In this document: positions 11,621-58,521 of the stretch, piece by piece
Layout: every line of letters starts with the position of its first letter
Numbering within the stretch: position 1 is the first letter of the stretch
Assembly (NCBI GenBank): GCA_976226885.1
Contig: OZ320313.1
Coordinates: forward strand, 248,001-312,000
DNA from: Iphione sp. A-MEVVRFRX5
Lineage: Eukaryota
Direction: 5' to 3'
DNA length: 64,000 bases
Position numbers and translations under genes: made by a program
Notes under the pieces: model-generated
Told to the model about the DNA's origin: nothing
Databases searched by the model: none
What the model saw: only the letters and a program-made list of their open reading frames with translations

Positions 11621-13048
11621 GAAATACTAAAAGTAAAGCCTACTGCAGAGTAACGTCTCTGACGAAAAATTTGTTTGTCTGGCAGGAACTTGTGTTCTCT
11701 CCTGCAATTCTTCATATCAGTGCTAAACATAACTGGACTTAAAACAGTGTAAAGCCATTGTATTTCATGTCGAGTCACTGTGTGAACAATGCAGATATTA
11801 TCAGTGATCCTTGACAAGACCCTAGATGCTGGGCGCTTGTGACGTCCTGATATCTAAGTCGTAATGACTCATTGTATCTTTGCCATGGATGTGTTGTCAC
11901 TATTGGTATATAATGAGAGCAGCCAGACACTCTCATCGGACTCGCCTTCCTGCTGCTGCTGAATTGCTGACTCACTGTACTAGTTGCTGACGAAGAATAA
12001 AAGGCTGATATTGAACCTGACGCTGTGGTGTTGGCTTTGTGCTACAGGTGAGGCTTCTTGATGGGAGGAGAAATCAGCTGAGAAGTAATCAGTGATTAGA
12101 CACTGATGCCCATCCTTAATTCTGTGAGAAGGATCTACTGAAATAGGGGCTTTATGGCTGTACAAATAAATTTACTGTTTTGAACAGGAGCTGTAAATAG
12201 GGGGTTAATTGTCTGGGAAATTACAGCAGATTTTGTAATCAATGTTAGCTTAGAGGAAAACCAAAGAACACCACATCAAAAAACATGCCGTTGTAATGTT
12301 TCTTTGTCTGATGAGTGCTGACAGTTAGCAGGCTTTAACCCCTTGCCGTCCGCGTCAAAAGACGTCATTCACATGCATCCAGAGCGGTTCATAGCTATTA
12401 TGTTTTAAATTCGTTCTGAATGAGGAAACGTATAAACTGAAGCTGCCATTAGATAAAAATTGTAATAGTCGTCATCCTAGTATATTTTTAAAGACTATTT
12501 TTAGAAATAAAAAATAGTATTTCTCCTTATGAAGGTGTAATGTATGTACGTAAAATTTGTTTTATCTTACGTCATTTCCGAAAAACATATGTTTTTGAGG
12601 TGAAATATTATTTGTACCGGCTAGACCTCTGGAGATGAATTAATAAGGAAGTCATAAGCATCAAAATGGTGAAAACAGAATAAAAATTGATTCATCCTAA
12701 ACTTACGTATGATCTTGAAAAGAGTAGTACGCTGTTGCCGTGACATAATGTAATGACGGTTACGCAGGATGTAAACAACTTTTATGACGTTGTTTTCCGG
12801 CTCTCTTCAAATAATACTTATATTGTGATAAAAGTTTTTCTAATCTGTACCAATGTCATTTAAATGACTAGGAATGGTAATATCTTGATTATTTTGAAAA
12901 AAAAATAAATATTTTGTCCGTTCATTAAATATGTACGTGACGTACATCCTGTGACAACACGTGCTGGTACGGAGCGGACAGCGAACATCGTTTACATTGT
13001 GAAATTGTAAAAATACGTGATCAAAGGCAGCACATCGACCATCAAAAC

Positions 13049-13738
13049 ATGCAGGCATTGGAAGAGGCATTTCGGAAGAAGGGGTAAGTGGTCAAATTAT
13101 ATGACATAAGGTTTTGTGTTTCTCAGTATTGCCTAGAAAATAATTTAGTCGAGGACCATGTGCTCTCCGCATTCAGCGCTACGTACAGTGCGGTCGGCTA
13201 GTGCCATGCATTACATATTTCTGCTATCCTTACTTGAGTATGAGCATTTTTTCCCAATTACTGGCAGTGTGAAGCAAATTGTAACTTATTAGTTGTGCCA
13301 TTTTTTGTAAATTTAGTTTAGAGATGCCTGATGGTCTCCGTCACCTGATAATGGAAGGGAGCAATAGGAAGTATGTGTACAAGCGGTTGTGGCAGGCTGT
13401 GAAGGTACGATGCTGACTTCTGCCTGTAATATTATGGCAACTACATTAGTTATGGATTAGAAACACATTCAATCCAATTATTACTGAACGAAGCCAAAAC
13501 CATGAGACAATTGAGATTGATTTTTATTCTTGAATGAAGATCGACATGTCAGAAAAGTGAAAGTGATATTCATATGATGTTCCAGTTTGGGGCCAAAATC
13601 GGATCAGGCTACAGAACATTTACCTTCCCTGAAGAGCTACGTCGTGCTGTGCGTGAACGGTTCCCAGACGAGCATGATCAGCACTATGATGAGCAGTACA
13701 GCCATAAACCAAGGGTTTGTATGCAATGTGCACGTTAA
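13049..13738 (+). CDS. Predicted 4-exon, 119-aa accessory gene inside the piggyBac, convergent with the transposase
   Basis: Exons 13049-13083, 13149-13237, 13322-13404, 13586-13738. GT..AG introns of 65, 84 and 181 nt with consistent phases 2,1,0. Protein: MQALEEAFRKKGRGPCALRIQRYVQCGRLVPCITYFCYPYLKMPDGLRHLIMEGSNRKYVYKRLWQAVKFGAKIGSGYRTFTFPEELRRAVRERFPDEHDQHYDEQYSHKPRVCMQCAR. Confidence 0.55.
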
Positions 13739-14062
13739 ATTTGTCACACTAATGTTAGCCACCTACATTATAGACGTACATGATAGCTAGTCTGTATGTA
13801 AGCACATATAATAATATTCAAGCTTCTAATTCTTACACTTCACAAGGATAATGATGCACTAGCTTCATAAGGGTAATTACTTACTAGCTTCATACGAATA
13901 ATTATTTACTAGCTTCATGAGCTAAGCAAACCGTTTCCTGATCTCCAGGTCTACCATGTAACCCTGGCTGAAGTCGCTGTCCTCCCTTACCCCAAGAGGA
14001 AGGATGCCTAGCTCAGCTTGAAATTGGCATGATCAGCCTCAAGGTTAGGACCTGCAAACAAA

Positions 14063-17000
14063 CTATTCATTGTTTAGTGCATAGAAGTGATCATAGTTGT
14101 CATGGCATCTGCTCATGCAGTTCCTCTCTCCTGTTAGACACAGGTAGACATCACACTCACGACACTTCCATTTGCCCTTCAACTCTTTCCTTTCTGTCAG
14201 GTAGCAGAGCCTGCAGTTCCTGCGGAAGGACGTGTGCTGAGGCATGTGCAGACCCGGTGACAAGTGGTAGGAGTGAGCCTGTGGTCTCCTGTTGTATGTT
14301 GGGATGTCCTCATCGTCCGTGATATTGGCCAGCTGACGGGCAAGCTCAACACGGAAACTCAGGTGTGAATATCCTAGCAGGAGATGACATAGTGTACATT
14401 AGTTGCATGTAATTGAATTTTCAATGTGATTTTCAGACTGAAGTAGATTGACTTACAAATTCAATGGCATAGAATTCCTACCCCTAGGCAGACAAAGAGA
14501 TCGGACTCTCTCAAAATCCAGTAATTCTATGTAGAAAAATTTAAGCTATTACCAGCCGGCCTCTTTAGTCCAGGGATTTCAGGATCTGCTGCCTGCCATT
14601 GCAGGAACAGCACAAAGCTGTTGTACACTGCTACATCGATGCAGTGAAACAGAAGGGTCTTCCACCAGCGGTGTGATTTCTGACGAACCTCGTAGTTGGC
14701 CAGTCTCTGGTCAGCTAAATCAACGCCTCCCATGTAGGCGTTATATTCATGGATGACCATCGGTTTTTTGACCATAATTGGCACATATTTGCCCTCCTTG
14801 TTTTTGGTAGCACGCTTTGCCATGATAAATGTATTGCCGCTGTGCAGGGTACTGGCCATAGACACCACCCTTGCATCTTTCCATTGTAGGAACAGGATGT
14901 CATCCTTCCGGACGAATCTCACATCACCTCTAGATGCCTTTTTCTCCCACTGTTTGTCACGTAGCTCCTATAATTATGCAAAAAAGACAGAGTTGTGGTG
15001 TGCAAATATACATTGGAAATGTATGCCATTTAAGAAATATTTCCACTGCATCGCAATTATCCAGGTTGAAACACTACCTATGCAAAAAGTTGCCTGAAAG
15101 TAATACGGCTGTGGGGTTTATTTTAAGGGTGTGAGACAGTTTTCAAGTGATGCAATTTCTATTCATTCATATGTTAGTGTTACTACTTTTCAAATTAACT
15201 TGTGCCTGCATACATTTTCTCGTATAAACATGAATACAAAAGGAAAAGATTCAAGAGATATGGCCCAAATTCTTCAGAGTTGAGTAGGAGTATCTTTGCT
15301 TTGCATGCCTGCAATGAGGATGACTAGCCACTCTATATATTGACCTCTCCATCTGACTGAATTCAACAAAATCTACCTGAGGGAATCCGCGACGCGTTCT
15401 CCAGGTGGTTCCACAAGCATATAATGACAGGTCACGCAGAGTCTTAAGAAGTTGTGCAGACGTGTAAAAGTTATCAAAGAAAATGTGATAGCTCTGTTCT
15501 CTGATAGACTGTACTAAATCCATGACAACGTCATAGGCAAGTCCGAATTTCCCAGGTCTCTGTCTGCGTCCAGTATAAATGCTTTGTAAAAAAGAGATTG
15601 TATTTTATGGTGTTACTCTCAATGTAAATATGTCTAACATAATTTCAATTCATGTGCAATGCATATCAATGCAATTTGAAATAGTAGCTATATAAGGGAG
15701 ACATTTCATGTTATATCACTCTTGTTTTTTGTATCAATAAAATTACTATAAAATCATATACTTACTCAAAGTCGATGTTGTATCCTGTTTGTGCCTCGCA
15801 CAGGCACCAAAGCTTAAAACCAAACCTCACCGGCTTATCAGGCATAAATTGCCTGATGCCGGATAGTCCTTTAGAACGGACCATCCGCTCATCGATTGAC
15901 ACGTTGCAATGAGGCTGGTACAGCACTTTACACATTTCCTTCAAATGGTTCACTAACGGTTTGATCTTTGCCAGCTTGTCAGTGCTGTCGTCCTTTCCTG
16001 GTTTTGAAACATGAATCATTCCCATCAGTGCTCGAAATCTGAAATAAAGCCATGCAATATGAAGTTAGTATACTAGCAAGGAACCAAATATCATTAGAGT
16101 GAACTTATTACAGTTAAATATATAGGTTTTTACAAATATGTCCCTCCTTACCGTGTCCTTGATAAGAACCTGCGAGCCCATCCACCATGGAAGAGTGTTG
16201 CTGTCGACCAGTAGTCATCTGCACATGGCATCCAAATAAAACCCATCATGATCAGAAGCCCAAGGAAATTGGACAACTCCTGCACAGTGACATTTTCCCA
16301 ACCTCCATCAAGTGACCTTGCATAGGATTTCTTTTCTTTTATATGCGCCCATCCGTACAAGTTAGTGTTGTAGCATATAAGCTGAAATCAAATTAAGAAA
16401 TTGATCATCAATAATCCAATACATTTTCCATATCTTGGTCCAATGAGCACAGTGCACTTGTTCTTGGGAGAAATGCATTATACATAAGCTACAAACTACA
16501 ACATTACATGACATATTCTAATATCCAAAATTACCTCTAAGATTCCACAAGTAAAGAAAAGTTTGAAAAAATCGATCGCTCTAGTGTAATTGGCAGCTTT
16601 CTGTCTGGAGATATGATCTTCCAAGTGTGGTCCAGGCACTCTCTTCGGCTTGAATCTGGGAACCGCAGGTTCAACATCATCACTCTCGTAACTCCTGAAA
16701 TGTTAAATACAGAACAACTGGTCACAAAAGAACTCATAAACGTCATGTTGGAACCAATTGTGCATATCTATAAACAGACAGTTACCCTACCTATGAATTA
16801 TGGTCTCCATGGCCAAACGGTTAACACGTTTGATTTTGAATTGTCAGATCCAGGTTCGAGTCCCACCCGGGTACACTTTTCACATCAGATGTATTACTTT
16901 TTTTGAGATTTAAAATGGAAATCAATGGTACAATACATTCATCAATTGTAAAGCAATGGGAACTACTAAAATTTACATCTAATAAGTGCAAGAAGACAAG

Positions 17001-17244
17001 ATACTTACTTGGTTGCAGTATTACGACTGTTGCCTCTTCTTCCACCAGGGGGACATGGTGAGGGGGTACTGCTCTCTTCTTCATCTGAGCTGCTCAAAAC
17101 ACGATTTAGGAGTTCCAAATCAAGTAGATCCTCTTCTTCATCGGAAAGACAATCGTATTCTTCATCAGAACTCTCACTTTCATTTAATCCCTGTGCCAAA
17201 AGCTCATTTGCTGCTACAGCAGCGGCCCGCACCGGTCTGGCCAT
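14063..17244 (-). CDS. piggyBac transposase, 7 exons, about 609 aa, apparently intact
   Basis: Exons 17244-17009, 16694-16535, 16381-16152, 16038-15766, 15581-15377, 14967-14553, 14373-14063. All introns are GT..AG with matching phases (2,0,2,2,0,1); total 1830 nt with no internal stop. Acidic N-terminus, IDFFKLFFT, SIDERM (D1), FDNFYTS (D2), GGVDLADQ (D3 region), and C-terminal Cys-rich domain CRLC..CRECDVYLC..C..CH. Confidence 0.93.
16802..16880 (+). pseudogene. tRNA-Gln(TTG)-like sequence (pseudogene or SINE head) in transposase intron 1
   Basis: GGTCTCCATGGCCAAACGGTTAACAC..TTTTGAA..GATCCAGGTTCGAGTCCC carries an A box, a B box, a TTG anticodon loop and a following TTTT. The anticodon and acceptor stems pair poorly. 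Confidence 0.55.
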
Positions 17245-18679
17245 GACGACTTCAACAGTGGCGGTTAACCATACCGGATGTGCTTCCCATAACATCATCG
17301 AATATTATAAAAAAAATTAATTCTTTTAATCAATAACAATGTATTTGCCTTTAAAAGACTCATTACTACCATCATACCAAAAATTATGGCAATCTGAAAA
17401 AAAACCTTCCTCCTACAGAGGTCGGAACTCATCGTACGGATCCGTACGATTTTACCATTGCTGGACGGTAAGGGGTTAAACAAAAGACAAAAATAAAGAA
17501 TCCGGTTCACTCCAAATACACAAATGTGTTGGGCATGGGTGATCTATCTCAAGAATGCAGTGAGAAAGTGTCTGTTTATTCAGAAAAACTGACTTCCTGT
17601 ATACCACGATTACATAACTATTGCTAAAAATAATGTGTCAAGTATTACCTCTTGATTTGATTAAATAATCAGAGGAAAAAATAACCTTCTATGATGCTGT
17701 TACTAATATTGCAAAACCTTCTATGCAGTGCAATTCGTGTTGAGTCCTTGGGTTACTTTAATGGCGATTGCCCCAAACAAAGTGCTCCCAAATTAAGTGC
17801 CAAGACACAGTTACCACACAGTTTACTGTTCACACCACAACGTTATCTCTATCTCTTTTTTATCAAAATACAACTGAAACACAATTCAGTCTGGTTTCGA
17901 AGTTTGGCTTTATTTCTGAGTGATGGATTTACATGTCCAGGGTGACAGCTACAACTGTGAGCAGACCAATGTTGATCATATGAGTTCAATCTCATATACA
18001 CTCAGCTTGATATGTCATGAAATCCCACTGTTAAACTTTGACGTGTTCAATTTCGAAGTTTCATCTCCAATCTAGTGACAAGAATGCTTTTAGAACCAAG
18101 ATTACTCATTTGTTACTGCAAACTACTCTGACATCTTTGAATTACTCTTTGCTTTCCCCCTTTCAAACAGATGGACTGTATTTCAGTATCTCCTCAGTTC
18201 CTTGTACTTGTCCTGCAAGATACAATATATCTTAATTAATCAGGCTCAACATGCTTATTTCTGAAACCCTTCCCTATTACTGTGTGTTATATCCATTGTC
18301 TCGTATATCTGTAAACAATACCAATAGCACAAGATCCCAAAACTATACAACATTCTATATTAGTTTATTCAGAGTACGACATTACTGTGTTGCACTTAAT
18401 GATATTATATACAGTTCTATTTGAGAGCCAATGCAGATTAGTGGATTTTGGATGTCATGATCCATCTTAGCTACATGTACTTGTATGGTTGGGCTTTTAG
18501 GGACATTGTAACAGTTTTACAGTAAACAGTAAACATGCTGATTAATTTTTAAAAAATGGTGCAAGACATTGGTGGCAAGGCTGCTACAGTGTAATAGTTC
18601 CATACTTTGTATTGTTCAACACAGTGTTAGATTTGGGAAGCAGCCGCGGTTGGGTGCTTGCTGACTTTAATCTTGGTTT

Positions 18680-37871: not shown

Positions 37872-40220
37872 ATGGCCGACTCCAAGCCATGGGCCTCAGA
37901 CTCAGAGGACTCCACTGAGTCTGAATCAGAGGACGAGATTCCCGTCAAGGTGTCTGCTGGTCCCACGTCTCCTGGTCCCTTGTCTCCTGCTGCTGCGTCT
38001 CCCGAACCCGAAGCTTCCAATGCAGAGGAAGGGGCGGCACCAGCGTCTGTAGAGGAACCAGCAAAGGCATCATCAGAGCCTAAAGAGGCTAGTCCAGTAC
38101 CAGAAGAACAGCCGCCCCTAGCTGAGGCTGCTCCACACAAGGGGGAGCCACGTGCAGGAGAAGCCCAACAGGAGGAGGCCGAGGAGGGGCAGGTAGAGGC
38201 GGCTAAAGTAGAAGACATCCCCGCGGCTGAAGCACCCAAAGAGGAGGTGCAGGAGGAAATGCATGAGGTACCCATTGTAGAGGAACCCAAAGAAGATACC
38301 CCTGCTCCAGAGGAAACGCCTAAGGCAGAGGAACAAGTTCAGGACAAGCCAGCTGTGGTGGAGATTCAAACAGAAGGGGCAGATGCCAAAGAAGAGGAGA
38401 TGCCCTCACCAGTTCCTGTGGTGGAAGAACCAGAAGAGGAGACAGAAGCAGCAGAGGTGGAGGTGGCGGAGCCTGCTAAAGAAGAAGTGCCTAAGATAGA
38501 GATTTCAGCAGAGGAAGAAGAGGTAGTTCCAGCTGAGAAACCTACAGAGCCAGAGGAAAAGCCAGCTGAGCCCACTCCAGTAATGGAGGAACCTGTGAAG
38601 GTGGAGGAAGCAGAGGTGGAGGAAGTGAAGGTGGGGGAGCCAGCTACTGACGAACCTGCAGCTGCTGTGGAAGCTGTGCCTGAGGTGAAACCAGCTGTAC
38701 AAGAACCAGCTCCAAGTGAAGAACCTAAAGTAGAAGTGCCAGTAGAAGAAGCTAAAGTAGAATCCGTGGAGGCACTGAGTGAGGAGGCTAATGTAGAAGT
38801 ACCAGTAGAAGAAGCAAAAGTTCAACCCCCGGAGGCACCAAGTGAGGAAGCTAAAGTAGAAGTACCAGTAGAAGAAGCTAAAGCTGAACCCCCAGAGGCA
38901 CCAAGTGAGGAAGCTAAAGTAGAAGTACCAGTAGAAGAAGCTAAAGCTGAACCCCCAGAGGCACCAAGTGAAGAAGCTAAAGTAGAAGTACCAGTCAAAG
39001 AAGCTCCCAAGGCAGAGGTTCCTGAACCTATAGCTGAACCTGTCCCCGAGGTTACTGCAGAACCAACGGCTGCAGAAGAAGTTCCTAAACAAGAGGAGGA
39101 AAAGGTTGAAAAGGCTGAAGAAGTAAAAGTGGAGGAAGCTGTCCCTGCAGCCGAAGCTGCTGATATTGAAGTACCAGTTCAGGTGGAGAATGAGGAGGTA
39201 TCTCCACCACCCTCACCTGAGGACAGGGCTTCTCCAGACGAAGAAAGGAAGAAGAAAAAGAGGGAAAAGAAAGAAAAGAAAGAGAAAAAGGAAAAGAAGA
39301 AAAAGGACCGGGAAGAGGTGGAGGAAGTAGAAGCAGGTGAACCGGAGGTTGTAGCGTTTGTTGCGGCACCAGTGGAGGTCAAAGTTGAGACTGCGGCTTC
39401 TGATGAGGTGGCATTAGTATCCACTCCACAACCAGTTGCAACGGAGGAGAGCAAGCCGGAAGAGGTAACCTTGGAAACCGTCGAGACGTCCCCGGAGAAA
39501 CCAGCCCTTGAGGCAGCGGAAGTGGCAGAGGCCACACCTGAAGAGGAAGTAGCGCCAGTTCCGGCGGAAGTCAAGGAAGCCGTCGAAGAGGTCAAGGCGG
39601 AGGAGGCGCCAGCACAGGAAGTTCCGGCTGCCGTTCCAGGTGTTGGCTTGGAGCCCGGTGCTGCCATCTGTGAAGTGACCGCCGAAGCTGCTGCTACCGC
39701 CGCCGCTGCCACCGACGTTCCGGAGGAGATAGAGCGGGTAGAGAAAGCCGAGGGGGAGGGAGCCTTCCACCAACTCAAGAAGATCCTCCAAGAAGACAAC
39801 GGACCAGCAGCAGCGATGGCGGCCGGAGGCGGGGGTGGTGCAGCGGAAGCAGGAACAGGAGTCCCGGAACCAACCAGCGACGCCCAGCGGGCAGCGGCGG
39901 AAGCTGCGGCAGCGGCCACTCTGGAGGACTACGGGGAGGTGGAGAAGGAGAAGGGTGGCCATGTTTACCGGGGCTGCGCACGCTTCATGAAGAAGGAGGG
40001 TGTTCCACTTAGCGCAGGGGGCATCCAGGTGCGAAGCCTGGTGGATCGTCAGGAATATTTGTACGACATGCTCAGCGTTCTGCGGTACCAACTCCACGAG
40101 GCAGACGCTGACCTGAGGGGGCTGAAGGCAGCTGTGTACCCGACCCTCTTCCACCCAACTCTACCCAACCGCTACTACATGCACGCCCAGCTCAAGACAA
40201 AGAGGAAGGCACAAGATTGA
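37872..40220 (+). CDS. Single-exon ORF for a 782-aa Glu/Pro/Ala/Lys/Val-rich, probably disordered protein with a C-terminal globular segment of about 95 aa
   Basis: 2.35-kb uninterrupted ORF; ATG in good context (GAAATGG); acceptor-like TTCCAG just upstream (possible 5' UTR intron); AATAAA near 40606. Family not recognised. Confidence 0.85.
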   Translation: MADSKPWASDSEDSTESESEDEIPVKVSAGPTSPGPLSPAAASPEPEASNAEEGAAPASVEEPAKASSEPKEASPVPEEQPPLAEAAPHKGEPRAGEAQQEEAEEGQVEAAKVEDIPAAEAPKEEVQEEMHEVPIVEEPKEDTPAPEETPKAEEQVQDKPAVVEIQTEGADAKEEEMPSPVPVVEEPEEETEAAEVEVAEPAKEEVPKIEISAEEEEVVPAEKPTEPEEKPAEPTPVMEEPVKVEEAEVEEVKVGEPATDEPAAAVEAVPEVKPAVQEPAPSEEPKVEVPVEEAKVESVEALSEEANVEVPVEEAKVQPPEAPSEEAKVEVPVEEAKAEPPEAPSEEAKVEVPVEEAKAEPPEAPSEEAKVEVPVKEAPKAEVPEPIAEPVPEVTAEPTAAEEVPKQEEEKVEKAEEVKVEEAVPAAEAADIEVPVQVENEEVSPPPSPEDRASPDEERKKKKREKKEKKEKKEKKKKDREEVEEVEAGEPEVVAFVAAPVEVKVETAASDEVALVSTPQPVATEESKPEEVTLETVETSPEKPALEAAEVAEATPEEEVAPVPAEVKEAVEEVKAEEAPAQEVPAAVPGVGLEPGAAICEVTAEAAATAAAATDVPEEIERVEKAEGEGAFHQLKKILQEDNGPAAAMAAGGGGGAAEAGTGVPEPTSDAQRAAAEAAAAATLEDYGEVEKEKGGHVYRGCARFMKKEGVPLSAGGIQVRSLVDRQEYLYDMLSVLRYQLHEADADLRGLKAAVYPTLFHPTLPNRYYMHAQLKTKRKAQD
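38716..39010 (+). repeat. In-frame 63-nt coding repeat (EEAKVEVPVEEAKAEPPEAPS), about 4.5 copies
   Basis: Visible in both DNA and protein. Confidence 0.9.
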
Positions 40221-47006: not shown

Positions 47007-50000
47007 AAAGACTACTGACAAGGAGACCACTATTTTACATAACCCTCTCAATTTGCAGTAGGACACTAAAAATGTTAAAAATACACTCAAGGCATCTTCC
47101 TTCTTATATCTCAACAGAAGGCACTCCATACATCTTATCAATAATTTACAGGCATAAAAGCAGCTCAGTTATTTTGTATTTTTACACTTCATACATAAAA
47201 CATTGCTGGAAAGTAGTTCTGGCCATGGGAAGTAGGTCTCAGTACTTTAAATTCTATGGAACCTCATGTATCCCTATGCTGATTTGTTGTTGACAGTATA
47301 AACCTCTGATTTTTGTTAACCACTACAGAGACAGGGAGAGGGATAGTCAGATAGACAGTCTTGGTAACATGACAGAGAAGACTGCTTTAGGTGGGAAAAA
47401 GACAAACCCCTCAGTCAGAAAGACATCCTGTACATTACATGTAGGTGTTCCACTATTTATGTTTGATCAACGTTCATGAGACAAATCACTCTATAGTCCT
47501 AATGTAATCAAATGCCTCTTACCATCAACAAAAAATAATCTACTCCATATTGGCTAAGAAGACGACACTAAGTGTAGCATCAGTAGCCCCATCAGACAAA
47601 CACACGGTCAAAATTTTCACTGGGGAGGTAGAAATGTGCAAGCTATATTTCCATAACACCACTGAATAAAATTACCCACTAATCTTCTACTTCCACCCTT
47701 ATATACAGGATGAAGTGGGTGAATCAGTAAAAGACATCCAAATTCAAATTGTATATGCACTTCCAGAACTGATTCTACCAATGGATCATGATGGTAATTG
47801 ACAGATGACTAAAATCCAGGAAGGGGACAATTTATCTTAATCCCAGTTTGAAAAATTATTTCCTATCATAATTCACATTCAAGGCATGTTACATTCATCC
47901 AAATAGTCTTCTAGATGTATACTTTGTATAGTTCCCACTGCTTTATCCACGTAGCTCATGCTAACAATGAATCTAAGTCAGTGTCCATACAAAGGCAGCA
48001 ATTAAACTGACTGGTCACTGGCAATTCTTTTCAAACAGCACTTTTAATATAAACAAATTGACAAAATATTATTTCCTCAATATATCCTTTAGATGCTTTG
48101 CAATGAGCTTCCTATAGGATGTGTACTCCTCCACTGCCTCTGCTGAAATGCTTGATGATATTGTTAAGCACTGTGATCACTTAAATGCCTTTAAAATATA
48201 TCCCATTACCATAAAGAATTTTGCTGTACTTTACAAATATACCATTTGACATAAACAACAGGCATTTAACCAAGTAATCCAAAGAATCAGTTGTATGACC
48301 ATTACATATAATGGGTTCAATTACCTCACACCCACCTGGACTGCATCACTGGTCTTTTGCCACACTTATTGCTCTTTTTCCAATAAACTCTTTGATGGGC
48401 TGCACCAAACAGCACAAAATTAGGGGCTAAGCAGATAATCAAATCAGCCTCCAGAATCGACATATCACTAGCAATACCTCCCACCCAAACAGTGTAGGTA
48501 GATTTATTATCTGATCTCACCACCTGCCCTATGGATTAGTTAAGAACAACCCTTACAGGTTATCCACTCCTCTTACTAACAAACCTTAGTCATTTGATTA
48601 TTAACATATGTTTATATCTTTCTACATGCTATATCATCAATACAAAACATTATTATCCTGGTCAATCAATTGACTAGTGTGTCATGAATGCAACAGCCTG
48701 AACTTGAATATATACCAAGCTAATCATTAAACAAAGGTATAATGTTTGAATTTATAGCCCAACATGACATTTGAATATTAAGTCCAACACAGACTACTGA
48801 CAAGTCCAACAAAGACTACTGACAAGGAGACCACTATTTTACATAACCCTCTCAATTTGCAGTAGGACACTAAAAATGTTAAAAATACACTCAAGGCATC
48901 ATCCTTCTTATATCTCAACAGAAGGCACTCCATACATCTTATCAATAATTTACAGGCATAAAAGCAGCTCAGTTATTTTGTATTTTTACACTTCATACAT
49001 AAAACATTGCTGGAAAGTAGTTCTGACCATGGGAAGTAGGTCTCAGTACTTTAAATTCTATGGAACCTCATGTATCCCTATGCTGATTTGTTGTTGACAG
49101 TATAAACCTCTGATTTTGTTAACCACTACAGAGACAGGGAGAGGGATAGTCAGATAGACAGTCTTGGTAACATGACAGAGAAGACTGCTTTAGGTGGGAA
49201 AAAGACAAACCCCTCAGTCAGAAAGACATCCTGTACATTACATGTAGGTGTTCCACTATTTATGTTTGATCAACGTTCATGAGACAAATCACTCTATAGT
49301 CCTAATGTAATCAAATGCCTCTTACCATCAACAAAAAATAATCTACTCCATATTGGCTAAGAAGATGACACTAAGTGTAGCATCAGTAGCCCCATCAGAC
49401 AAACACACGGTCAAAATTTTCACTGGGGAGGTAGAAATGTGCAAGCTATATTTCCATAAAACCACTGAATAAAATTACCCACTAATCTTCTACTTCCACC
49501 CTTATATACAGGATGAAGTGGGTGAATCAGTAAAAGACATCCAAATTCAAATTGTATATGCACTTCCAGAACTGATTCTACCAATGGATCATAATGGTAA
49601 TTGACAGATGACTAAAATCCAGGAAGGGGACAATTTATCTTAATCCCAGTTTGAAAAATTATTTCCTATCATAATTCACATTCAAGACATGTTACATTCA
49701 TCCAAATAGTCTTCTAGATGTATACTTTGTATAGTTCCCACTGCTTTATCCACGTAGCTCATGCTAACAATGAATCTAAGTCAGTGTCCATACAAAGGCA
49801 GCAATTAAACTGACTGGTCACTGGCAATTCTTTTCAAACAGCACTTTTAATATAAATAAATTGACAAAATATTATTTCCTCAATATATCCTTTAGATGCT
49901 TTGCAATGAGCTTCCTATAGGATGTGTACTCCTCCACTGCCTCTGCTGAAATGCTTGATGATATTGTTAAGCACTGTGATCACTTAAATGCCTTTAAAAT

Positions 50001-52397
50001 ATATCCCATTACCATAAAGAATTTTGCTGTACTTTACAAATATACCATTTGACATAAACAACAGGCATTTAACCAAGTAATCCAAAGAATCAGTTGTATG
50101 ACCATTACATATAATGGGTTCAATTACCTCACACCCACCTGGACTGCATCACTGGTCTTTTGCCACACTTATTGCTCTTTTTCCAATAAACTCTTTGATG
50201 GGCTGCACCAAACAGCACAAAATTAGGGGCTAAGCAGATAATCAAATCAGCCTCCAGAATCGACATATCACTAGCAATACCTCCCACCCAAACAGTGTAG
50301 GTAGATTTATTATCTGATCTCACCACCTGCCCTATGGATTAGTTAAGAACAACCCTTACAGGTTATCCACTCCTCCTACTAACAAACCTTAGTCATTTGA
50401 TTATTAACATATGTTTATATCTTTCTACATGCTATATCATCAATACTAAACATTATTATCCTGGTCAATCAATTGACTAGTGTGTCATTAATGCAACAGC
50501 CTGAACTTGAATATATACCAAGCTAATCATTAAACAAAGGTATAATGTTTGAATTTATAGCCCAACATGACATTTGAATATTAAGTCCAACACAGACTAC
50601 TGACAAGTCCAACAAAGACTACTGACAAGGAGACCACTATTTTACATAACCCTCTCAATTTGCAGTAGGACACTAAAAATGTTAAAAATACACTCAAGGC
50701 ATCATCCTTCTTATATCTCAACAGAAGGCACTCCATACATCTCATCAATAATTTACAGGCATAAAAGCAGCTCAGTTATTTTGTATTTTTACACTTCATA
50801 CATAAAACATTGCTGGAAAGTAGTTCTGGCCATGGGAAGTAGGTCTCAGTACTTTAAATTCTATGGAACCTCATGTATCCCTATGCTGATTTGTTGTTGA
50901 CAGTATAAACCTCTGATTTTTGTTAACCACTACAGAGACAGGGAGAGGGATAGTCAGATAGACAGTCTTGGTAACATGACAGAGAAGACTGCTTTAGGTG
51001 GGAAAAAGACAAACCCCTCAGTCAGAAAGACATCCTGTACATTACATGTAGGTGTTCCACTATTTATGTTTGATCAACGTTCATGAGACAAATCACTCTA
51101 TAGTCCTAATGTAATCAAATGCCTCTTACCATCAACAAAAAATAATCTACTCCATATTGGCTAAGAAGACGACACTAAGTGTAGCATCAGTAGCCCCATC
51201 AGACAAACACACGGTCAAAATTTTCACTGGAGAGGTAGAAATGTGCAAGCTATATTTCCATAAAACCACTGAATAAAATTACCCACTAATCTTCTACTTC
51301 CACCCTTATATACAGGATGAAGTGGGTGAATCAGTAAAAGACATCCAAATTCAAATTGTATATGCACTTCCAGAACTGATTCTACCAATGGATCATGATG
51401 GTAATTGACAGATGACTAAAATCCAGGAAGGGGACAATTTATCTTAATCCCAGTTTGAAAAATTATTTCCTATCATAATTCACATTCAAGACATGTTACA
51501 TTCATCCAAATAGTCTTCTAGATGTATACTTTGTATAGTTCCCACTGCTTTATCCACGTAGCTCATGCTAACAATGAATCTAAGTCAGTGTCCATACAAA
51601 GGCAGCAATTAAACTGACTGGTCACTGGCAATTCTTTTCAAACAGCACTTTTAATATAAACAAATTGACAAAATATTATTTCCTCAATATATCCTTTAGA
51701 TGCTTTGCAATGAGCTTCCTATAGGATGTGTACTCCTCCACTGCCTCTGCTGAAATGCTTGATGATATTGTTAAGCACTGTGATCACTTAAATGCCTTTA
51801 AAATATATCCCATTACCATAAAGAATTTTGCTGTACTTTACAAATATACCATTTGACATAAACAACAGGCATTTAACCAAGTAATCCAAAGAATCAGTTG
51901 TATGACCATTACATATAATGGGTTCAATTACCTCACACCCACCTGGACTGCACCACTGGTCTTTTGCCACACTTATTGCTCTTTTCCAATAAACTCTTTG
52001 ATGGGCTGCACCAAACAGCATAAAATTAGGGGCTAAGCAGATAATCAAATCAGCCTCCAGAATCGACATATCACTAGCAATACCTCCCACCCAAACAGTG
52101 TAGGTAGATTTATTATCTGATCTCACCACCTGCCCTATGGATTAGTTAAGAACAACCCTTACAGGTTATCCACTCCTCCTACTAACAAACCTTAGTCATT
52201 TGATTATTAACATTTTTTTATATCTTTCTACATGCTATATCATCAATACTAAACATTATTATCCTGGTCAATCAATTGACTAGTGTGTCATGAATGCAAC
52301 AGCCTGAACTTGAATATATACCAAGCTAATCATTAAACAAAGGTATAATGTTTGAATTTATAGCCCAACATGGCATTTGAATATTAAGTCCAACACA
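47007..52397. repeat. Three near-identical tandem copies of a 1.8-kb unit
   Basis: The same short ORFs recur at 47072, 48876, 50679 and at 48326, 50129 (period 1803-1804). Units start near 47007, 48811 and 50614. Confidence 0.95.
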
Positions 52398-52990
52398 ATG
52401 TTTAAATATATAGTGACTCCTTCCTTATCGCACCACCCCTTCCTTATCTACTCAATATTTACCATACTGACATCCCTTGACCACTAGATGTCATCAATTT
52501 GACCCATCATTATGCATTTTTGTTTACCTTCCCCCATCATGTGTAATCCATACAATTCTCAATATTAACTGTGCTTCTTAAATTAAATCAAATACAGTTG
52601 TGACTCATCAACAGGATGCCTCCCATTTCTGATATGTTTTGTCTGGACACTGGATAATCTAGTTACTGAAACAGGGAAACATTAACATTATGTTGAGTCT
52701 CCTGATGGTGAGGTTTGATGTATACTAAATGTGGCACATATAGTGGAATGTCTACTTTTGACCAACCCTCCATTCCTAACCCAAATTTTTGAATCAGCAA
52801 TATCAGTTGCAAATTTCTGATAAAATTGGTACCAGCATAAGTGCACTACATAAATGAGGCAAAAAATACAGAAAAAAAATTTTTCTTTTGGCACCTTGAA
52901 CTGTAACCTTTGACCTTTGACTTGGTAACCATAACAACTATCCACAATTGTTAACCTTATACCTGAGATTACAGCCAAAAGCAATACAGT

Positions 52991-53030
52991 GCTCCTGAAG
53001 AAGGTTATCACTACAACCGAAACGTTGAGC
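52991..53030 (+). ncRNA. Minimal type I hammerhead ribozyme in the 5' pLTR
   Basis: GCTC-CTGAAGA-A-GGTT(ATCACTAC)AACC-GAAA-CG-TT-GAGC: stem I, core, stem II, and palindromic ACGT stem III. Confidence 0.8.
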
Positions 53031-53308
53031 TATATTCTGTAAAAATCAGCAATAAAGCCAATCTCATTAACTGAATTACTGTCATTGGGTTTTGATTGAT
53101 TCAATACTCTCTCAGAACTTCTTCTTTCAACCATTGCATCCATTCATCGGATCCCCAAGACAGGAATTCCGATTCCACACACTGGTCCATTGTTTCTATC
53201 CACACTGACTCGGCCTAACGGCAGACAATAGGAACACGCATCTACATTAGATCTGGACCAACAAAGGTACCCCCACCACCCGGAATACACTAATAACACA
53301 CCTCACCC

Positions 53309-53869
53309 ATGGCTGACACTAACGACAACACTCAACCACCCACAAACAACCAAAATAACACCCAACCATCAATCAGAATCCCCGATACAGCCGTTCCATA
53401 TTTTCGCATGTGCCGGAAATTAGCATTAAACATTATAAAGGCCAAACACCACCATGAGTACCTAAACAGATGCCTTGAAAACAGGGCATCCCCGAAGGGA
53501 CTTCAAATAAGAGTCCCTGCACAAATACCTGAACCAACACCAGATTTCACTATTACCTGGGAAAGAGCACACCTTTCCTTTAGTCGTGAACTCACAGTAA
53601 TACTAGCTGATTATTACGGAGCCAGGGTGGACACCCTGACCCAGCAACTACAACAGTCAAAAACTGAATTACAGAAGCTCTGTAACCCCGAACAACGACA
53701 ACACATACAAACTATAATATGCAGGCTAGAATCCACACAGCAAACAGCCCTACAGCAGCGAAGAGTAAGAAAAACCGGCGATTCCTCCGGTACAACCCAT
53801 CGGACAGACCGAGCACCATCTACAACCTCTCTAGCCATCCCCTCAACCAGTCAGAATGCTCAGTCCTAG
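53309..53869 (+). CDS. PLE N-terminal region ORF (186 aa), overlapping the RT ORF in the -1 frame
   Basis: HHEYLNRCLENRASPKGLQI motif and a helical, Gln-rich stretch resembling PLE N-termini. Confidence 0.7.
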   Translation: MADTNDNTQPPTNNQNNTQPSIRIPDTAVPYFRMCRKLALNIIKAKHHHEYLNRCLENRASPKGLQIRVPAQIPEPTPDFTITWERAHLSFSRELTVILADYYGARVDTLTQQLQQSKTELQKLCNPEQRQHIQTIICRLESTQQTALQQRRVRKTGDSSGTTHRTDRAPSTTSLAIPSTSQNAQS

Positions 53870-55980
53870 AGTTAGGACTGAGCTTCGTACCCACACCACC
53901 CAAACCCAACCATATCCACACCGTCAGAGATACCCTCTTATTCACAAGACGAATTAAACTCAAACACTATTTCCAACATATGGAAACATCACAAACTCCC
54001 CCAGTCTTCCCACAAGAAAAGACTGGGTGGACCCCACCACCGAACATCTGTGAATATATAGACACAAGCACAAACTACATCATCAGACAAATGTCAAAAC
54101 AACCACAGAAGATACACATAGCCGATAATCTTTCCAAACACCAGAGGAAAGCCTTACATGATCTAACAAAAAACCCCAACATCATCATCAAACCAGCAGA
54201 TAAAGGCGGAGGCATAGTCATACTCGATCGAGTGGACTATGAAACAGAAGCCAACAGACAACTCAACAATGACCAACATTACATCCAAACACCTAATGAC
54301 ACCACAACCCAACGTGCACAGACAATCTTACAACAACTCTTACATATGGAGGACAGAAACGAGATACCCCCAGGTGCACATAAGATGCTAATTCCCAAGA
54401 ACGTCAGAACCTCACCATTCTACCTTCTCCCTAAGATCCACAAACCTGGCCACCCTGGAAGGCCAATTGTATCAGGGATCGATTCCCCAACTGATCGACT
54501 ATCCCGCACCATAGACAAAATACTCAAACCCCTAGTACCACTATCACCCAGCTACATCAAGGACACCAAGCACTTCATTAACATCATTCAAGACCTAAAA
54601 CCGCTAGAACCAGATGAGTATCTGGCCACTATTGATGTCTCAGCACTATACACATCAATCCCTCATGATGAAGGAATGGCGGCAGTCCATAATGCCCTAT
54701 CCTCCCGTCCATCACCCCACATAATGCCACACACTGCATCAACCCTAGTTGAACTAATACTCAAGAACAACACTTTCCATTTCAATGGACAGTTCTACCA
54801 CCAGATACATGGTACCGCAATGGGCACAAAAATGGCTCCTAACTATGCTAACCTCTTCATGACTCAACTAGAATCAGGACTGATAAACTGGATGACACTC
54901 AAACCAATAATATGGAAAAGATACATAGATGACATCTTTGCCATCTTCAAAGGCACCCACGATGAAATCACCACACAACTAGACTCTCTCAACCAATTCC
55001 ACCCCACAATCAAGTTCACATATGAAATAAGCAACACATCCATCAACTTCTTGGACACCACAATATCCGCAGACACAAATGGCAACCTCACAACGAAACT
55101 CTATCGAAAGCCCACAGACACTTTCTCCTACCTACACTACAGCTCACACCACCCAACACACCTCAAGGATGCAATAGCATACAGCCAAGCTGTTAGAATC
55201 AGGATGATCTGTAGCAATATCACTGATTTCGACAAATCGTGCAGAGAACTACTGAAACAACTAACACTAAGGGGACACATACACAACAGAGTCAAACAAT
55301 CCATAGCGAGAGCTAGGGAACTGGACCGAAATGAACTACTGAAAACAACAAAAAAGAAAGAGAAACGTATCATTCCATTTGTAGTGGAATTCAACCCCTA
55401 CCACCACAGGACCCACCAAATAATAAATGAGGCACTGTCGCTCATCCCCGAGACCCCGATCAATGCCAAATTCAGGCAATATCAATGGATGGTGACACAC
55501 AGAAGAACTGCAAACCTGAGAGACATCCTAACATCGTCCCCCCACCCCCGGCCACCGGCCCAATCCGGTAGCAAACCCTGTATGAAATTGTCTTGCAATC
55601 ACTGCGAACAGGTCATTCGCAGCAAACAAATCACCTCCAACACCACTAGGAACATACACATAATCAGATCTAACATCGATTGTCAGACCCGGGGCATTAT
55701 ATATGTCCTGACCTGTCCGGCCTGCCACCAACAATACGTTGGTCAAACTGGCCGGAGAGCCGCCCAACGCATCGCCGACCACAAAAGTGACTTGAGAAGA
55801 CGTAACAAAAACTCACCGGTAGCTAAACACATGGTTGACCATGATGTAGACCCTGAAGATCTCCAGTTCACACTGGTAGAGACAGCTCCAGATGATAAGA
55901 ACACCAGACTCAGGCTAGAAGAAGCCTGGATACGAACTCTTGACAGCATGACACCACACGGCATCAACACGCAACTATGA
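53719..55980 (+). CDS. PLE reverse transcriptase plus GIY-YIG endonuclease (753 codons open)
   Basis: IIIKPADKGG, FYLLPKIHK, GRPIVS, IDVSALYTSIP, GTAMG, RYIDDIF, LYRKPTD, PCMKLSCNHC linker, GIIYVLTCPACHQQYVGQTGR, RLEEAWI, GIN. Confidence 0.95.
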   Translation: MQARIHTANSPTAAKSKKNRRFLRYNPSDRPSTIYNLSSHPLNQSECSVLELGLSFVPTPPKPNHIHTVRDTLLFTRRIKLKHYFQHMETSQTPPVFPQEKTGWTPPPNICEYIDTSTNYIIRQMSKQPQKIHIADNLSKHQRKALHDLTKNPNIIIKPADKGGGIVILDRVDYETEANRQLNNDQHYIQTPNDTTTQRAQTILQQLLHMEDRNEIPPGAHKMLIPKNVRTSPFYLLPKIHKPGHPGRPIVSGIDSPTDRLSRTIDKILKPLVPLSPSYIKDTKHFINIIQDLKPLEPDEYLATIDVSALYTSIPHDEGMAAVHNALSSRPSPHIMPHTASTLVELILKNNTFHFNGQFYHQIHGTAMGTKMAPNYANLFMTQLESGLINWMTLKPIIWKRYIDDIFAIFKGTHDEITTQLDSLNQFHPTIKFTYEISNTSINFLDTTISADTNGNLTTKLYRKPTDTFSYLHYSSHHPTHLKDAIAYSQAVRIRMICSNITDFDKSCRELLKQLTLRGHIHNRVKQSIARARELDRNELLKTTKKKEKRIIPFVVEFNPYHHRTHQIINEALSLIPETPINAKFRQYQWMVTHRRTANLRDILTSSPHPRPPAQSGSKPCMKLSCNHCEQVIRSKQITSNTTRNIHIIRSNIDCQTRGIIYVLTCPACHQQYVGQTGRRAAQRIADHKSDLRRRNKNSPVAKHMVDHDVDPEDLQFTLVETAPDDKNTRLRLEEAWIRTLDSMTPHGINTQL

Positions 55981-56059
55981 AACCGCTACGTCACCGTGAC
56001 GTAACACCGCTGCGCCATTATGACGTAGCATTGTTACGTCGCACCAACAATCGGTAACC

Positions 56060-56611
56060 ATGACACCTACAAATCCATCCACAATCGGGTACTTCAGTAC
56101 AACCGCTCGCACCGCAGACACGTCTCTAATAATGGAGAAATTTAATCAATGCACCATTTGTGGGGAATGGATCCGGAAAGGCGAAAGGGTCCTACTTACC
56201 CACCTGAATAACAAACACAACAAGCCAGGGATGAAGGTCTCTGGTAAGTTACCCTGTTATTATTGCACAGACATGTTCAGTCGCTCGGATAGCCTACGGC
56301 GACACATCAAAACAATTCATGATATCACTGATCCACCACCGCGCCCACAATACGTAGCTATCCATACCAGTGAAGAAATCAAACCTGCATCAAAACCTCA
56401 TACTCGAATTTTGCCTAAATACCAAGTACGAACAGTATACAATACTCCCCTTGTCTGCAGATCGGGCCGTTCTGAGTGGAGACAAAGGTGGGACAACCAC
56501 AACAAGGGCGACAGGTACGACGAATATGGCAACAACATCAACACACACAAACATCAACAACAACAGCAACACCACCAATCCACAAATGACCGGTACGAAA
56601 AGGGCTATTGA
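56060..56611 (+). CDS. PLE-internal accessory ORF with two C2H2 zinc fingers (183 aa)
   Basis: CTIC..HLNNKH and CYYCTDMFSRSDSLRRHIKTIH; lies between the RT stop and the 3' pLTR. Confidence 0.75.
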   Translation: MTPTNPSTIGYFSTTARTADTSLIMEKFNQCTICGEWIRKGERVLLTHLNNKHNKPGMKVSGKLPCYYCTDMFSRSDSLRRHIKTIHDITDPPPRPQYVAIHTSEEIKPASKPHTRILPKYQVRTVYNTPLVCRSGRSEWRQRWDNHNKGDRYDEYGNNINTHKHQQQQQHHQSTNDRYEKGY

Positions 56612-57299
56612 AATTGAACCACCAGAGACAGACCCAACTGTACGCAAATGGGCACGACATGTACATCCACTAGCTCGACTGACGCTGCATAAACACAAGC
56701 AGAGAGTAGCCTCACGCCTGAAGAAGACCAAAGTCGTTAGCAGTTCCAGTAGCAGCTCAAGCATCGCCTCATCAAACTCAGAAGACAACAATTCTGACAC
56801 GAAGAACCCCAAGAACATCCCTGACAAGGTAGACTTCACCAAACTACTGCAGGCAGATCTGGACGTATCGAGTGACTCAGACGACGAGCCAGTACCAAGC
56901 AGACTCAAGTCCAAGCAAGCAGCAGTACCAGCCAAGAAAGCTCCACCAAGGTCCAACGAAGTGAAGAAACACAAAGAAAGCACCCCTGACACTGCCAAGA
57001 ACAGCAGTGTATCCACCAAGAAGGCACAAGAGAAAAGGGCTCTTTTACCAACACCGAAAGTAGAAGAGTATATTCCAGAACCCATTTGTAGCAATAGTTC
57101 TAGTAGTAGCTCTAGAGACCGTAATAAAGCATTAACAGCACCTTTGCTAAGGGTAGTTCCCACCGATGAATGGTTATATGATATCTATAGTATGGTAATC
57201 AAGGCAGATTTGTACATCGGTAACGCCATGGGACGTGCCATGGTTATCAGAGGCCTAGCCCCCAAGTCGCATATCAATACCATAAAGAAACGTTTGTAA
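56370..57299 (+). CDS. PLE-internal Ser/Lys/Thr-rich ORF (309 codons open), overlapping the ZnF ORF in the +1 frame
   Basis: Long open frame ending 50 nt before the 3' pLTR; hydrophobic C-terminus EWLYDIYSMVIKADLYIG. The real start is uncertain (possibly MATTS near 56526). Confidence 0.55.
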   Translation: MKKSNLHQNLILEFCLNTKYEQYTILPLSADRAVLSGDKGGTTTTRATGTTNMATTSTHTNINNNSNTTNPQMTGTKRAIEIEPPETDPTVRKWARHVHPLARLTLHKHKQRVASRLKKTKVVSSSSSSSSIASSNSEDNNSDTKNPKNIPDKVDFTKLLQADLDVSSDSDDEPVPSRLKSKQAAVPAKKAPPRSNEVKKHKESTPDTAKNSSVSTKKAQEKRALLPTPKVEEYIPEPICSNSSSSSSRDRNKALTAPLLRVVPTDEWLYDIYSMVIKADLYIGNAMGRAMVIRGLAPKSHINTIKKRL

Positions 57300-57465
57300 G
57301 TTGCAACCCATATCTCCAGTAGCCAGTAGAATCATATTGTATATGAGTAAAAAATTTTTCTTTTGGCACCTTGAACTGTAACCTTTGACCTTTGACTTGG
57401 TAACCATAACAACTATCCACAATTGTTAACCTTATACCTGAGATTACAGCCAAAAGCAATACAGT

Positions 57466-57505
57466 GCTCCTGAAGAAGGTTATCACTACAACCGAAACGT
57501 TGAGC
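57466..57505 (+). ncRNA. Minimal type I hammerhead ribozyme in the 3' pLTR
   Basis: Identical copy of 52991-53030. Confidence 0.8.
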
Positions 57506-57634
57506 TATATTCTGTAAAAATCAGCAATAAAGCCAATCTCATTAACTGAATTACTGTCATTGGGTTTTGATTGATTCAATACTTTCTCAGAAATACAGAA
57601 TTTGTTACACCATCTAAACGAGAAACATAATAAC

Positions 57635-58521
57635 ATGAACAACAATGTTATCGGTAAGTATCCATGCTATAGATGCAATAAGTCATTCACTCATTACGGC
57701 TAACTCAAAAGACATGCAATGAATTTACACCAATATTTAAATCCGGAGCCTAGAGTGATTTTAGACAAACTTCGGAGACAGAGTAAACCAACCAAAACAC
57801 CATGGCAAGACAATAGAATAACACCACGGAACGTCAAATTCAAGCTTAAATACCTTGACATTCCTTCCAGGAGTATACTCAGAGAGAGAAACGCCTGTGA
57901 GGGAAGCACTCAAACCAGCTCCAGACACTAAATCAACCCCAACAGGAAAATCATCCCCAACAACCAAGGAAATCGTATCACAAAGAAAATAAAACAACAC
58001 GAAGCATGCTCCAGGAGAACCATCCAGATATTTCAGCCAACTTCAATCTAACAGTTTGCAGGAACAATAGGCATACATCAGCAATTGCAAGAACAAAGAC
58101 ACCACTATCGTCCCCAAGAACATCCAATCACAAGGATTCAATTACACTGGAAAAGGTAAAGTCCATTCTGAAAACAAGCCCACCAGCGAAGAAAACATGC
58201 TCTACCATCAACTTTGAGGAAGAGCTCAGACTATCATTGAGCAACAGCGATGATGATGACAATGAAGACACTGCGGATAAAGAATCCATCGGCACTAACA
58301 ACAATGAGGCCGAAGATGTCCTGGTAATTCTAGATGACAGTGAACAACTGACCAAAGAGAACGAGACACCTAAAGAAAATGACTTTGCAGTAAGAAGAGT
58401 GACTCCTGATCCGACAAACGATGAACCATACATCCCACACTCAATCAACAGTTCTAACATGGTTCAGCGTGACTCTCCTATCTTCTCAATGTCTAAGAAA
58501 CGTATTGAAACCTGGGACTAA
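57635..58521 (+). pseudogene. Degenerate C2H2 zinc-finger plus acidic/Ser-rich ORF, outside the PLE TSD
   Basis: MNNNVIGKYPCYRCNKSFTHYG*LKRHAMNLHQYLNPEPR (one in-frame TAA), then ORF 58006..58521 in another frame. Confidence 0.55.

Follow-up and report, generated by a model that had tools for sequence, protein, structure and literature searches.

A piggyBac element within an older repeat

The window analysed here is a 64,000-nucleotide stretch of the genome of Iphione sp. A-MEVVRFRX5 (assembly GCA_976226885.1, here G000, of 1.18 Gb in 89 contigs; contig C1, positions 248001-312000), and it contains no N. Between positions 12339 and 17475 of the window (260339-265475 of contig C1) lies a piggyBac element of 5,137 bp, which is bounded by inverted ends of 13 bp (terminal inverted repeats, TIRs) and by TTAA duplications. 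On its minus strand the element carries a transposase gene of seven exons; there are also a small second gene that converges on it from the left end and a tRNA-like unit within the first transposase intron (Table 1). Taken together, the evidence makes it very probable that this is a real and structurally intact insertion of a piggyBac of the autonomous type, whose seven-exon transposase belongs to an old family that has been mobile in recent times.

The sequence that flanks the element on its right is part of an older dispersed repeat, which in the window comprises 12291-12338 together with 17476-17840 and whose copies are 72-85% identical. Nine other copies of this host repeat match 12291-12334, pass through a single TTAA or TTGAA and match again from 17480 onwards, most of them reading TTGAA where the window reads TTAA. 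Because these empty copies run straight through, the boundaries of the element are exact at 12339 and 17475 and the TTAA duplication is demonstrated; and because all nine are uninterrupted at the insertion point, the element is a true insertion rather than a domesticated gene. An empty allele on an alternate haplotype was not found, the best non-self match of the right flank being 85% identical. The two TIRs begin with CCC and match at 12 of 13 positions, and the TIR consensus common to the paralogs described below is CYCCTTNCCGWCC. An earlier reading of this DNA, made from the sequence only, had described intact TIRs and TTAA target-site duplications around a candidate active element, and the ends and their setting in a transposon are borne out by the near-identical ends, by the empty host-repeat sites and by relatives that have TTAA-flanked TIRs of their own.

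A 20-bp palindrome lies 25 bp internal to the right end. The same sequence is found in six close subfamilies, and the distant ones at loci L039, L040, L042 and L043 have other sequences that are still palindromic. From this pattern the palindrome on the transposase side looks like a protein-binding site that co-evolves with its protein, and by analogy with T. ni piggyBac it is likely to be the binding site of a dimeric Cys-rich domain.

A transposase in seven exons

The seven minus-strand exons, of 236, 160, 230, 273, 205, 415 and 311 nt, add up to 1830 nt, equivalent to 609 codons and a TAG stop. All six introns begin with GT and end with AG, their acceptors are pyrimidine-rich and all twelve splice dinucleotides are intact. 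The four codons that are split between exons specify K, R, D and G, and no exon contains an internal stop. The exon arithmetic therefore agrees with the sequence-only reading, which had proposed seven exons, six GT-AG introns and a protein of 609 amino acids with no break in frame.

Homology searches with the transposase, as with the second gene, were made exon by exon only. Taken singly, exons 3, 4, 5 and 6 score 31.6, 78.2, 46.7 and 62.9 bits, respectively, against PF13843 (DDE_Tnp_1_7), all above the Pfam gathering threshold of 22.4 bits, and they are colinear on the profile (positions 18-69, 82-170, 188-244 and 247-349); no meaningful Pfam match was obtained with exons 1, 2 and 7. The DDD catalytic motifs that had been named from the sequence are confirmed by alignment to known transposases. 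The aspartate of SIDER in exon 4 aligns with D268 of the T. ni transposase (PDB 6x67), the aspartates of GGVDLADQ in exon 6 align with D447 and D450 of the same protein, and FFDNFYTS in exon 5 aligns with the DNYY motif of piggyBat (9c0f). Within the family the catalytic aspartates are invariant, except for D>N changes in L045 (exon 5) and in L042 and L046 (exon 6). A complete Cys-rich domain had also been proposed, and exon 7 does contain the pattern C-x2-C-x13-C-x2-C-x4-C-x7-C-x4-H, which is kept in all family members but L041, where the first cysteine is replaced (C>R). No canonical poly(A) signal was found near the stop codon of either the transposase or the second gene.

Table 1. Features of the piggyBac element and its immediate borders, in window coordinates
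Feature	Position	Strand	Remarks
Left TTAA target-site duplication	12335..12338	.	Single TTAA/TTGAA at the equivalent point of empty host-repeat copies
Left 13-bp TIR, CCCCTTGCCGTCC	12339..12351	+	End bordering the second gene
Second gene, exon X1	13049..13083	+	ATG, 35 nt, donor GTAAGT; peptide kept in L031 and L032
Second gene, exon X2	13317..13404	+	Peptide kept in 15 of 16 paralogs (none in L040; short pieces in L034 and L035)
Second gene, exon X3	13586..13714	+	Motif FP.E.R.AVRERFPD...YD.QY
Second gene, exon X4	13949..14011	+	TAG stop; VYHVTL..LPYPK kept in 15 of 16 paralogs (not found in L034)
Transposase exon 7	14063..14373	-	Cys-rich domain; TAG at 14065-14063; private W>C at codon 14107-14105
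Transposase exon 6	14553..14967	-	Third catalytic Asp at 14721-14719 (GGVDLADQ)
Dispersed repeat of ~340 bp, 5'-truncated copy	15071..15359	-	Inside intron 5 (14968-15376), in transposase-sense orientation
Transposase exon 5	15377..15581	-	Second catalytic Asp at 15475-15473 (FFDNFYTS)
Transposase exon 4	15766..16038	-	First catalytic Asp at 15893-15891 (SIDER); private R>L at 15866-15864
Transposase exon 3	16152..16381	-	PF13843 match
Transposase exon 2	16535..16694	-	Aligned in paralogs
tRNA-like unit	16800..16885	+	In intron 1, antisense to the transposase; A-box-like motif, TTTTG loop, B box, T-run
Transposase exon 1	17009..17244	-	ATG at 17244; acidic, Ser-rich N-terminus; similarity to paralogs begins at that Met
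Palindrome of 20 bp, ATCGTACGGATCCGTACGAT	17431..17450	.	25 bp internal to the right end
Right 13-bp TIR, reverse complement CCCCTTACCGTCC	17463..17475	-	Pairs with the left TIR
Right TTAA target-site duplication	17476..17479	.	Matches the left TTAA; single TTAA/TTGAA in empty host-repeat copies

An old family with recently mobile members

The element as a whole occurs once in the assembly; everything else matches its exons only, at 65-79% DNA identity. The left 562 bp of the element are unique; the right 231 bp recur only in their final ~50 bp, which are common to the whole family. The near-identical copies for which the sequence-only reading had proposed a search are absent for this subfamily throughout the 1.18 Gb, and neither sibling copies nor derivatives of the kind known as miniature inverted-repeat transposable elements were found there. 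At the protein level, a search of the genome with exon 6 gave 1,717 candidates. Of these, 150 were scored; all had E values below 1e-42, about nine in ten were without a stop codon, and the best non-self match was 67% identical.

We compared the element with 16 diverged paralogs (40-80% amino-acid identity), and the exon borders of the element are shared across all of them. The eight nearest can be aligned with the element over the full length of every one of the seven exons; AG and GT are present nearly everywhere at the predicted borders of exons 2-7, and the introns are 90-453 nt long. At one otherwise conserved border, that of intron 6 in L037, the donor is GC rather than GT. The seven-exon layout is thus a trait of the family, common to many copies and to an element of another species (L059, described below), and is not peculiar to this copy.

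A scan for TTAA adjoining 13-bp ends, with at most two mismatches allowed, recovered TTAA-flanked TIRs in nine of the 16 paralogs. L044 and L045 are also flanked by TTAA, with TIRs that are less perfect (CCCCTTCCCATTCA versus CCCTATCCCATTTA). These two, both of them two-gene piggyBac copies, lie on different chromosomes (L044 at ~680 kb of contig C11, L045 at ~74.24 Mb of contig C15, both in G000) and share 98.96% identity across 4,230 bp; their TTAA sites are separate and their flanks unrelated. Near-identity combined with separate TTAA sites and flanks shows that intron-bearing members of the family have moved recently. Such mobility is seen for the sister subfamily L044/L045 only; for the element itself it is the past insertion that is observed, through the empty sites.

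The synonymous differences between the element and every paralog are saturated (proportion of synonymous differences, pS, ~0.82), for which reason pN, the nonsynonymous proportion, was compared with pS rather than dN/dS being calculated. For the transposase pN is 0.20-0.25 and for the second gene 0.19-0.38. Saturation of pS alongside low pN indicates that the subfamilies are old and that the transposase has been under strong purifying selection; the second gene, too, shows purifying selection.

A convergent second gene and a tRNA-like unit

The second gene is modelled as 104 codons in four exons, with three GT-AG introns and no cysteine. It is convergent with the transposase gene, and its stop at 14011 lies 51 bp from the transposase stop. 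An end reached by read-through to 13738 was considered and rejected; exon X4 is conserved, which places the true end of the gene at 14011. The peptides of X2, X3 and X4 are each kept in 15 or 16 of the 16 paralogs, as well as in L059. Across the genome X3 is represented by at least 555 candidate copies, which typically lie ~1 kb from a homolog of transposase exon 6 on the opposite strand. Neither this gene nor the tRNA-like unit figured in the sequence-only reading.

A few piggyBac families encode a protein that resembles the cysteine-poor C-terminal part of KolX (Kojima and Bao 2022, PMC9587614). The P2X7 ballast/KolX features comprise similarity to the P2X7 C-terminal domain and seven conserved cysteines that bind two zinc ions, and the piggyBac proteins match the cysteine-poor part only (PMC9587614). 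The tail printed there (...GIRRLWPDE...Y.GF) resembles X3 (..AVRERFPDE..HYDEQY) by eye only; the piggyBac families concerned, piggyBac-2_GrCh and piggyBac-14_PI, are named in a supplement only and come from hosts that are not animals. The exons of the second gene had no meaningful match in Pfam, searches of the PDB with X3 singly or with a 15-sequence X3 profile returned no P2X7, and an Atlas search of the exons gave nothing above 0.85. Kinship of the second gene with KolX or P2X7 was therefore not confirmed by the per-exon Pfam, PDB, profile and Atlas searches, and no homolog of the gene was found in the sea urchin or tick PGBD4-like elements discussed below.

The tRNA-like unit has GGTTCGAGTCC as its B box, at 16854-16864, and the B-box motif of the unit is GGTTCGANNCC. 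Sixteen of the 17 elements, and L059 also, have such a unit ~120-180 nt upstream of exon 2. A blastn comparison of intron 1 of the window with the paralogs gave no match, from which it follows that the unit is conserved as motifs and not as sequence. ARAGORN predicted no tRNA in the 17 elements, and Rfam reported none at the gathering score; the tRNA model reached 13.4 bits on L042, against a threshold of 29 and with the acceptor stem absent, and found nothing on the plus strand of the window. RNAalifold gave no consensus structure for the unit.

Probable loss of introns in blocks

A matrix of introns was drawn up for the 16 paralogs and L059. Elements L039 to L046 (G000 contigs C1, C2, C4, C11, C15 and C22) are without some of the introns at exon borders that are otherwise identical. 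L039 retains introns 1 and 6 alone; L040, L044 and L045 retain introns 2 and 3; L041 retains introns 2, 3 and 6; and L042, L043 and L046 retain introns 2 and 6. The introns that are absent always form one contiguous block containing introns 4 and 5 (2-5, 3-5, 4-5 or 4-6). In a tree of exon 4, L040, with introns 2 and 3, groups with L043 and L046, which have introns 2 and 6 (support 100/98). Given this grouping, a history of gains only would need repeated gains at identical positions, and this argues for loss rather than parallel gain.

L059 comes from another species (ENA ERZ25767047, ctg38044, 689 kb). All six introns are present in it, and its exon 5 is divided once more; intron 1 contains a B box in antisense orientation, the second gene is there as well, and a candidate pair of TTAA-flanked TIRs lies 7.7 kb apart. 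A tree of exon 6 places L059 outside the family of the Iphione genome, and in the approximately unbiased (AU) test exon 6 rejects a tree in which L059 is joined to the seven-exon clade (p = 0.022). On the grouping of L040, L043 and L046 and on the position of L059, the seven-exon layout is most likely ancestral to the lineage, and the intron-poor forms most likely arose from it by loss of blocks. Two points count against this history, namely that the AU test on exon 4 was not significant for L059 (p = 0.12) and that the backbones of the trees, from a sample of 17 elements, are weakly resolved. Recombination with spliced cDNA would be expected to produce a block pattern and is the most likely mechanism of loss.

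Intron 1 appears to have been kept, unlike introns 2-6, because 16 of the 17 elements have, upstream of exon 2, non-coding DNA that bears the tRNA-like unit. Judged from these comparisons, its retention fits a function for the unit, for example in Pol III transcription or TFIIIC binding.

Condition of the copy and alternative readings

Several observations weigh against our reading of the element as an intact and recently mobile transposon. The subfamily is single-copy and no derivative shares its ends, so that it gives no direct sign of recent movement. At the columns that are near-invariant among 19 sequences the copy carries a single private change, which is R>L in KGLSG at the position of R277 of T. 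ni piggyBac, where engineered variants in which autonomous integration is reduced carry Ala (PMC8642419). In the other copies of the genome the Cys-rich domain closes with WH, which is CH here (W>C, before the last His). Position 7 of the left TIR is a mismatch to the right TIR and to both TIRs of the nearest paralog, L031. The Cys-rich tail of exon 7 had no sequence match in Pfam or the PDB, where there were only chance matches to zinc fingers; splicing of the transposase in vivo is suggested by comparison among copies alone; and the repeat nested in intron 5 is old, being more diverged than its genomic copies are among themselves.

The alternative that best survives, and to which we give a substantial probability that falls somewhat short of even, is that the element is a real piggyBac insertion but a dead one, its transposase inactivated by the R>L and W>C substitutions or silenced, and that it is no candidate tool as it stands. 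Two private substitutions at residues conserved in the family, a single-copy subfamily lacking derivatives with the same ends, and a mismatch in the TIRs are what a dead copy would explain, whereas the 609-codon frame and the twelve splice dinucleotides are all intact. The count of private changes is also an ordinary one, at one here compared with one to three in other intact copies and ten in the degraded L034, and roughly half of the elements in which TIRs were detected have mismatches in them. We consider the competence of the copy to be about evenly balanced. The suggestion in the sequence-only reading that this is a candidate active element is accordingly plausible in itself, and is weakened by the single-copy state of the subfamily, by the two substitutions, by the TIR mismatch and by the restriction of observed mobility to a sister subfamily.

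It is very unlikely that the gene model is an artefact, in which the supposed introns would be nested insertions or decayed parts of an open reading frame (ORF) that was once continuous and is not spliced. A dispersed repeat does sit nested in intron 5, and the nearest sea urchin and tick relatives do have a continuous ORF; however, 16 paralogs and the element of another species have their exon borders at exactly the same residues, AG and GT are kept at nearly all borders with phases that fit, exonic pN is far below pS, and the paralogs have an intron 5 at the same site without the repeat. The nested copy is 72-77% identical to copies elsewhere in the genome, which are themselves mostly 82-91% identical to one reference copy and which, when full, open with a (CA)n tract and a C-rich stretch. 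Intron 5 is ~270 nt longer here than in most paralogs. The possibility that the intron itself arose as an introner was rejected, the repeat making up 289 of its 409 nt and the paralogs having the same-site intron without it.

That an old passenger is carried in an unbroken gene of 609 codons would imply that the lineage went on transposing under selection after it had gained the repeat, and that the present insertion is young. The intact frame and the twelve intact splice sites likewise point to a young insertion.

A domesticated host gene of the PGBD5 kind, immobile and with introns acquired in its service as a host gene, is extremely improbable: it would account for the seven exons, which PGBD5 also has (PMC3902484), for the single-copy subfamily and for a frame intact despite deep divergence from all paralogs, but not for intact TIRs and TTAA duplication, for insertion into an older repeat of which other copies are empty at that point, for retention of every catalytic aspartate and of the Cys-rich domain, for relatives with the same exons that are TTAA-flanked transposons (one pair 98.96% identical), or for nearest public relatives that are PGBD4-like and not PGBD5.

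A model for the element

According to the reading that we prefer, that of an intact member of a mobile family, an autonomous-type, cut-and-paste, TTAA-targeting piggyBac inserted into the older dispersed repeat. Its transposase would be transcribed leftward from the right end and spliced from seven exons into a protein of 609 amino acids. The N-terminus of this protein is acidic, its RNase-H-like DDD core comes from exons 3-6, and its Cys-rich C-terminus (exon 7) would bind DNA at the subterminal palindrome. The small four-exon gene of 104 codons, whose predicted product is like the tail of KolX, would be read from the left end towards the transposase. Transposition at the level of DNA carries the introns along with the exons, and sister subfamilies would have lost contiguous blocks of introns, most likely by recombination with spliced cDNA.

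A more far-reaching possibility, which we think improbable, is that these components represent a working and ancient three-part design, in which a transposase with many introns is joined by an accessory protein like the KolX tail and by a tRNA-like unit, antisense and serving Pol III or TFIIIC, the last being the reason why intron 1, unlike introns 2-6, is never lost. If this were true, transposition or its control would need accessory parts, and this copy or its kin could lead to a TTAA-specific vector system that is regulated differently.

Comparison with known piggyBac systems

The element resembles T. ni piggyBac (6x67/6x68) and piggyBat (9c0f) in its TTAA target, in its short TIRs starting with CCC, in the DDE_Tnp_1_7 core and Cys-rich C-terminus of its transposase, and in having asymmetric ends with a subterminal palindrome. 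The similarity was measured per exon only, with E values of 1e-5 to 6e-14, and the Cys-rich tail was unmatched by sequence. In contrast to the single uninterrupted ORF of these two systems, the element has six introns, a convergent second gene and a tRNA-like unit.

Among public sequences the nearest relatives are PGBD4-like elements from the sea urchin Lytechinus pictus (XP_063958469) and from the ticks Rhipicephalus sanguineus (XP_049268709) and Dermacentor. Exon by exon they show 43-53% identity, and over a 435-aa ORF of a paralog the identity does not exceed 51%. They too are TTAA-flanked with TIRs, but the equivalent of exons 2-7 is one continuous frame in them. PGBD5, on the other hand, has its transposase domain split into seven exons, as here. 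It is single-copy and syntenic from lancelet to man, and it lacks TIRs, three of four conserved aspartates and the Cys-rich domain (PMC3902484, PMC5381638); the element retains TIRs, target-site duplication, DDD motifs and Cys-rich domain, and is an insertion.

Mobile piggyBacs have been said to lack introns in the transposase domain (Pavelitz et al. PMC3902484; Bouallegue et al. PMC5381638), and only intronless relatives were reported in echinoderms, hemichordates and urochordates (PMC3902484, PMC5381638). Pokey of Daphnia is a mobile piggyBac with a single intron of 68-84 bp, the splicing of which was confirmed by RT-PCR (PMC3849761). It is thus similar to the element in being a mobile piggyBac whose transposase requires splicing, and differs in having one intron rather than six, in targeting rDNA and in that no second gene has been reported for it. 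The novelty that the sequence-only reading attached to an intron-rich mobile piggyBac was overstated to the extent that Pokey has an intron and that the layout is a trait of the family. The piggyBac kind itself is known, and what is new is that a lineage with six introns is still mobile and carries an accessory gene and a tRNA-like unit as well.

In published surveys mobile piggyBacs have a single ORF and introns are taken as a mark of domestication, as in PGBD5 and the piggyMacs; the family described here is large, diverse and recently mobile, and keeps six introns at fixed positions. Searches that are based on ORFs miss elements split by introns in this way. The sister lineages form a natural series for the study of how DNA transposons keep or lose introns, and the family offers candidate TTAA-specific transposases; the roles of the accessory gene and tRNA-like unit that accompany them could be examined by experiment. 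The practical value of this single copy is modest until activity has been demonstrated.

Other observations in the window

To the left of the element, positions 11939-12046 are a 108-bp stretch of a very abundant and young repeat, for which there were 1,644 candidates; the 39 non-self copies that were scored are nearly all 94-98% identical, with one at 91%. Further along the window the composition is strongly skewed: AT skew is 0.43 at 38001-40000, and in the region 48001-58000 GC skew falls to -0.30 and AT skew rises to 0.33 at 52-56 kb.

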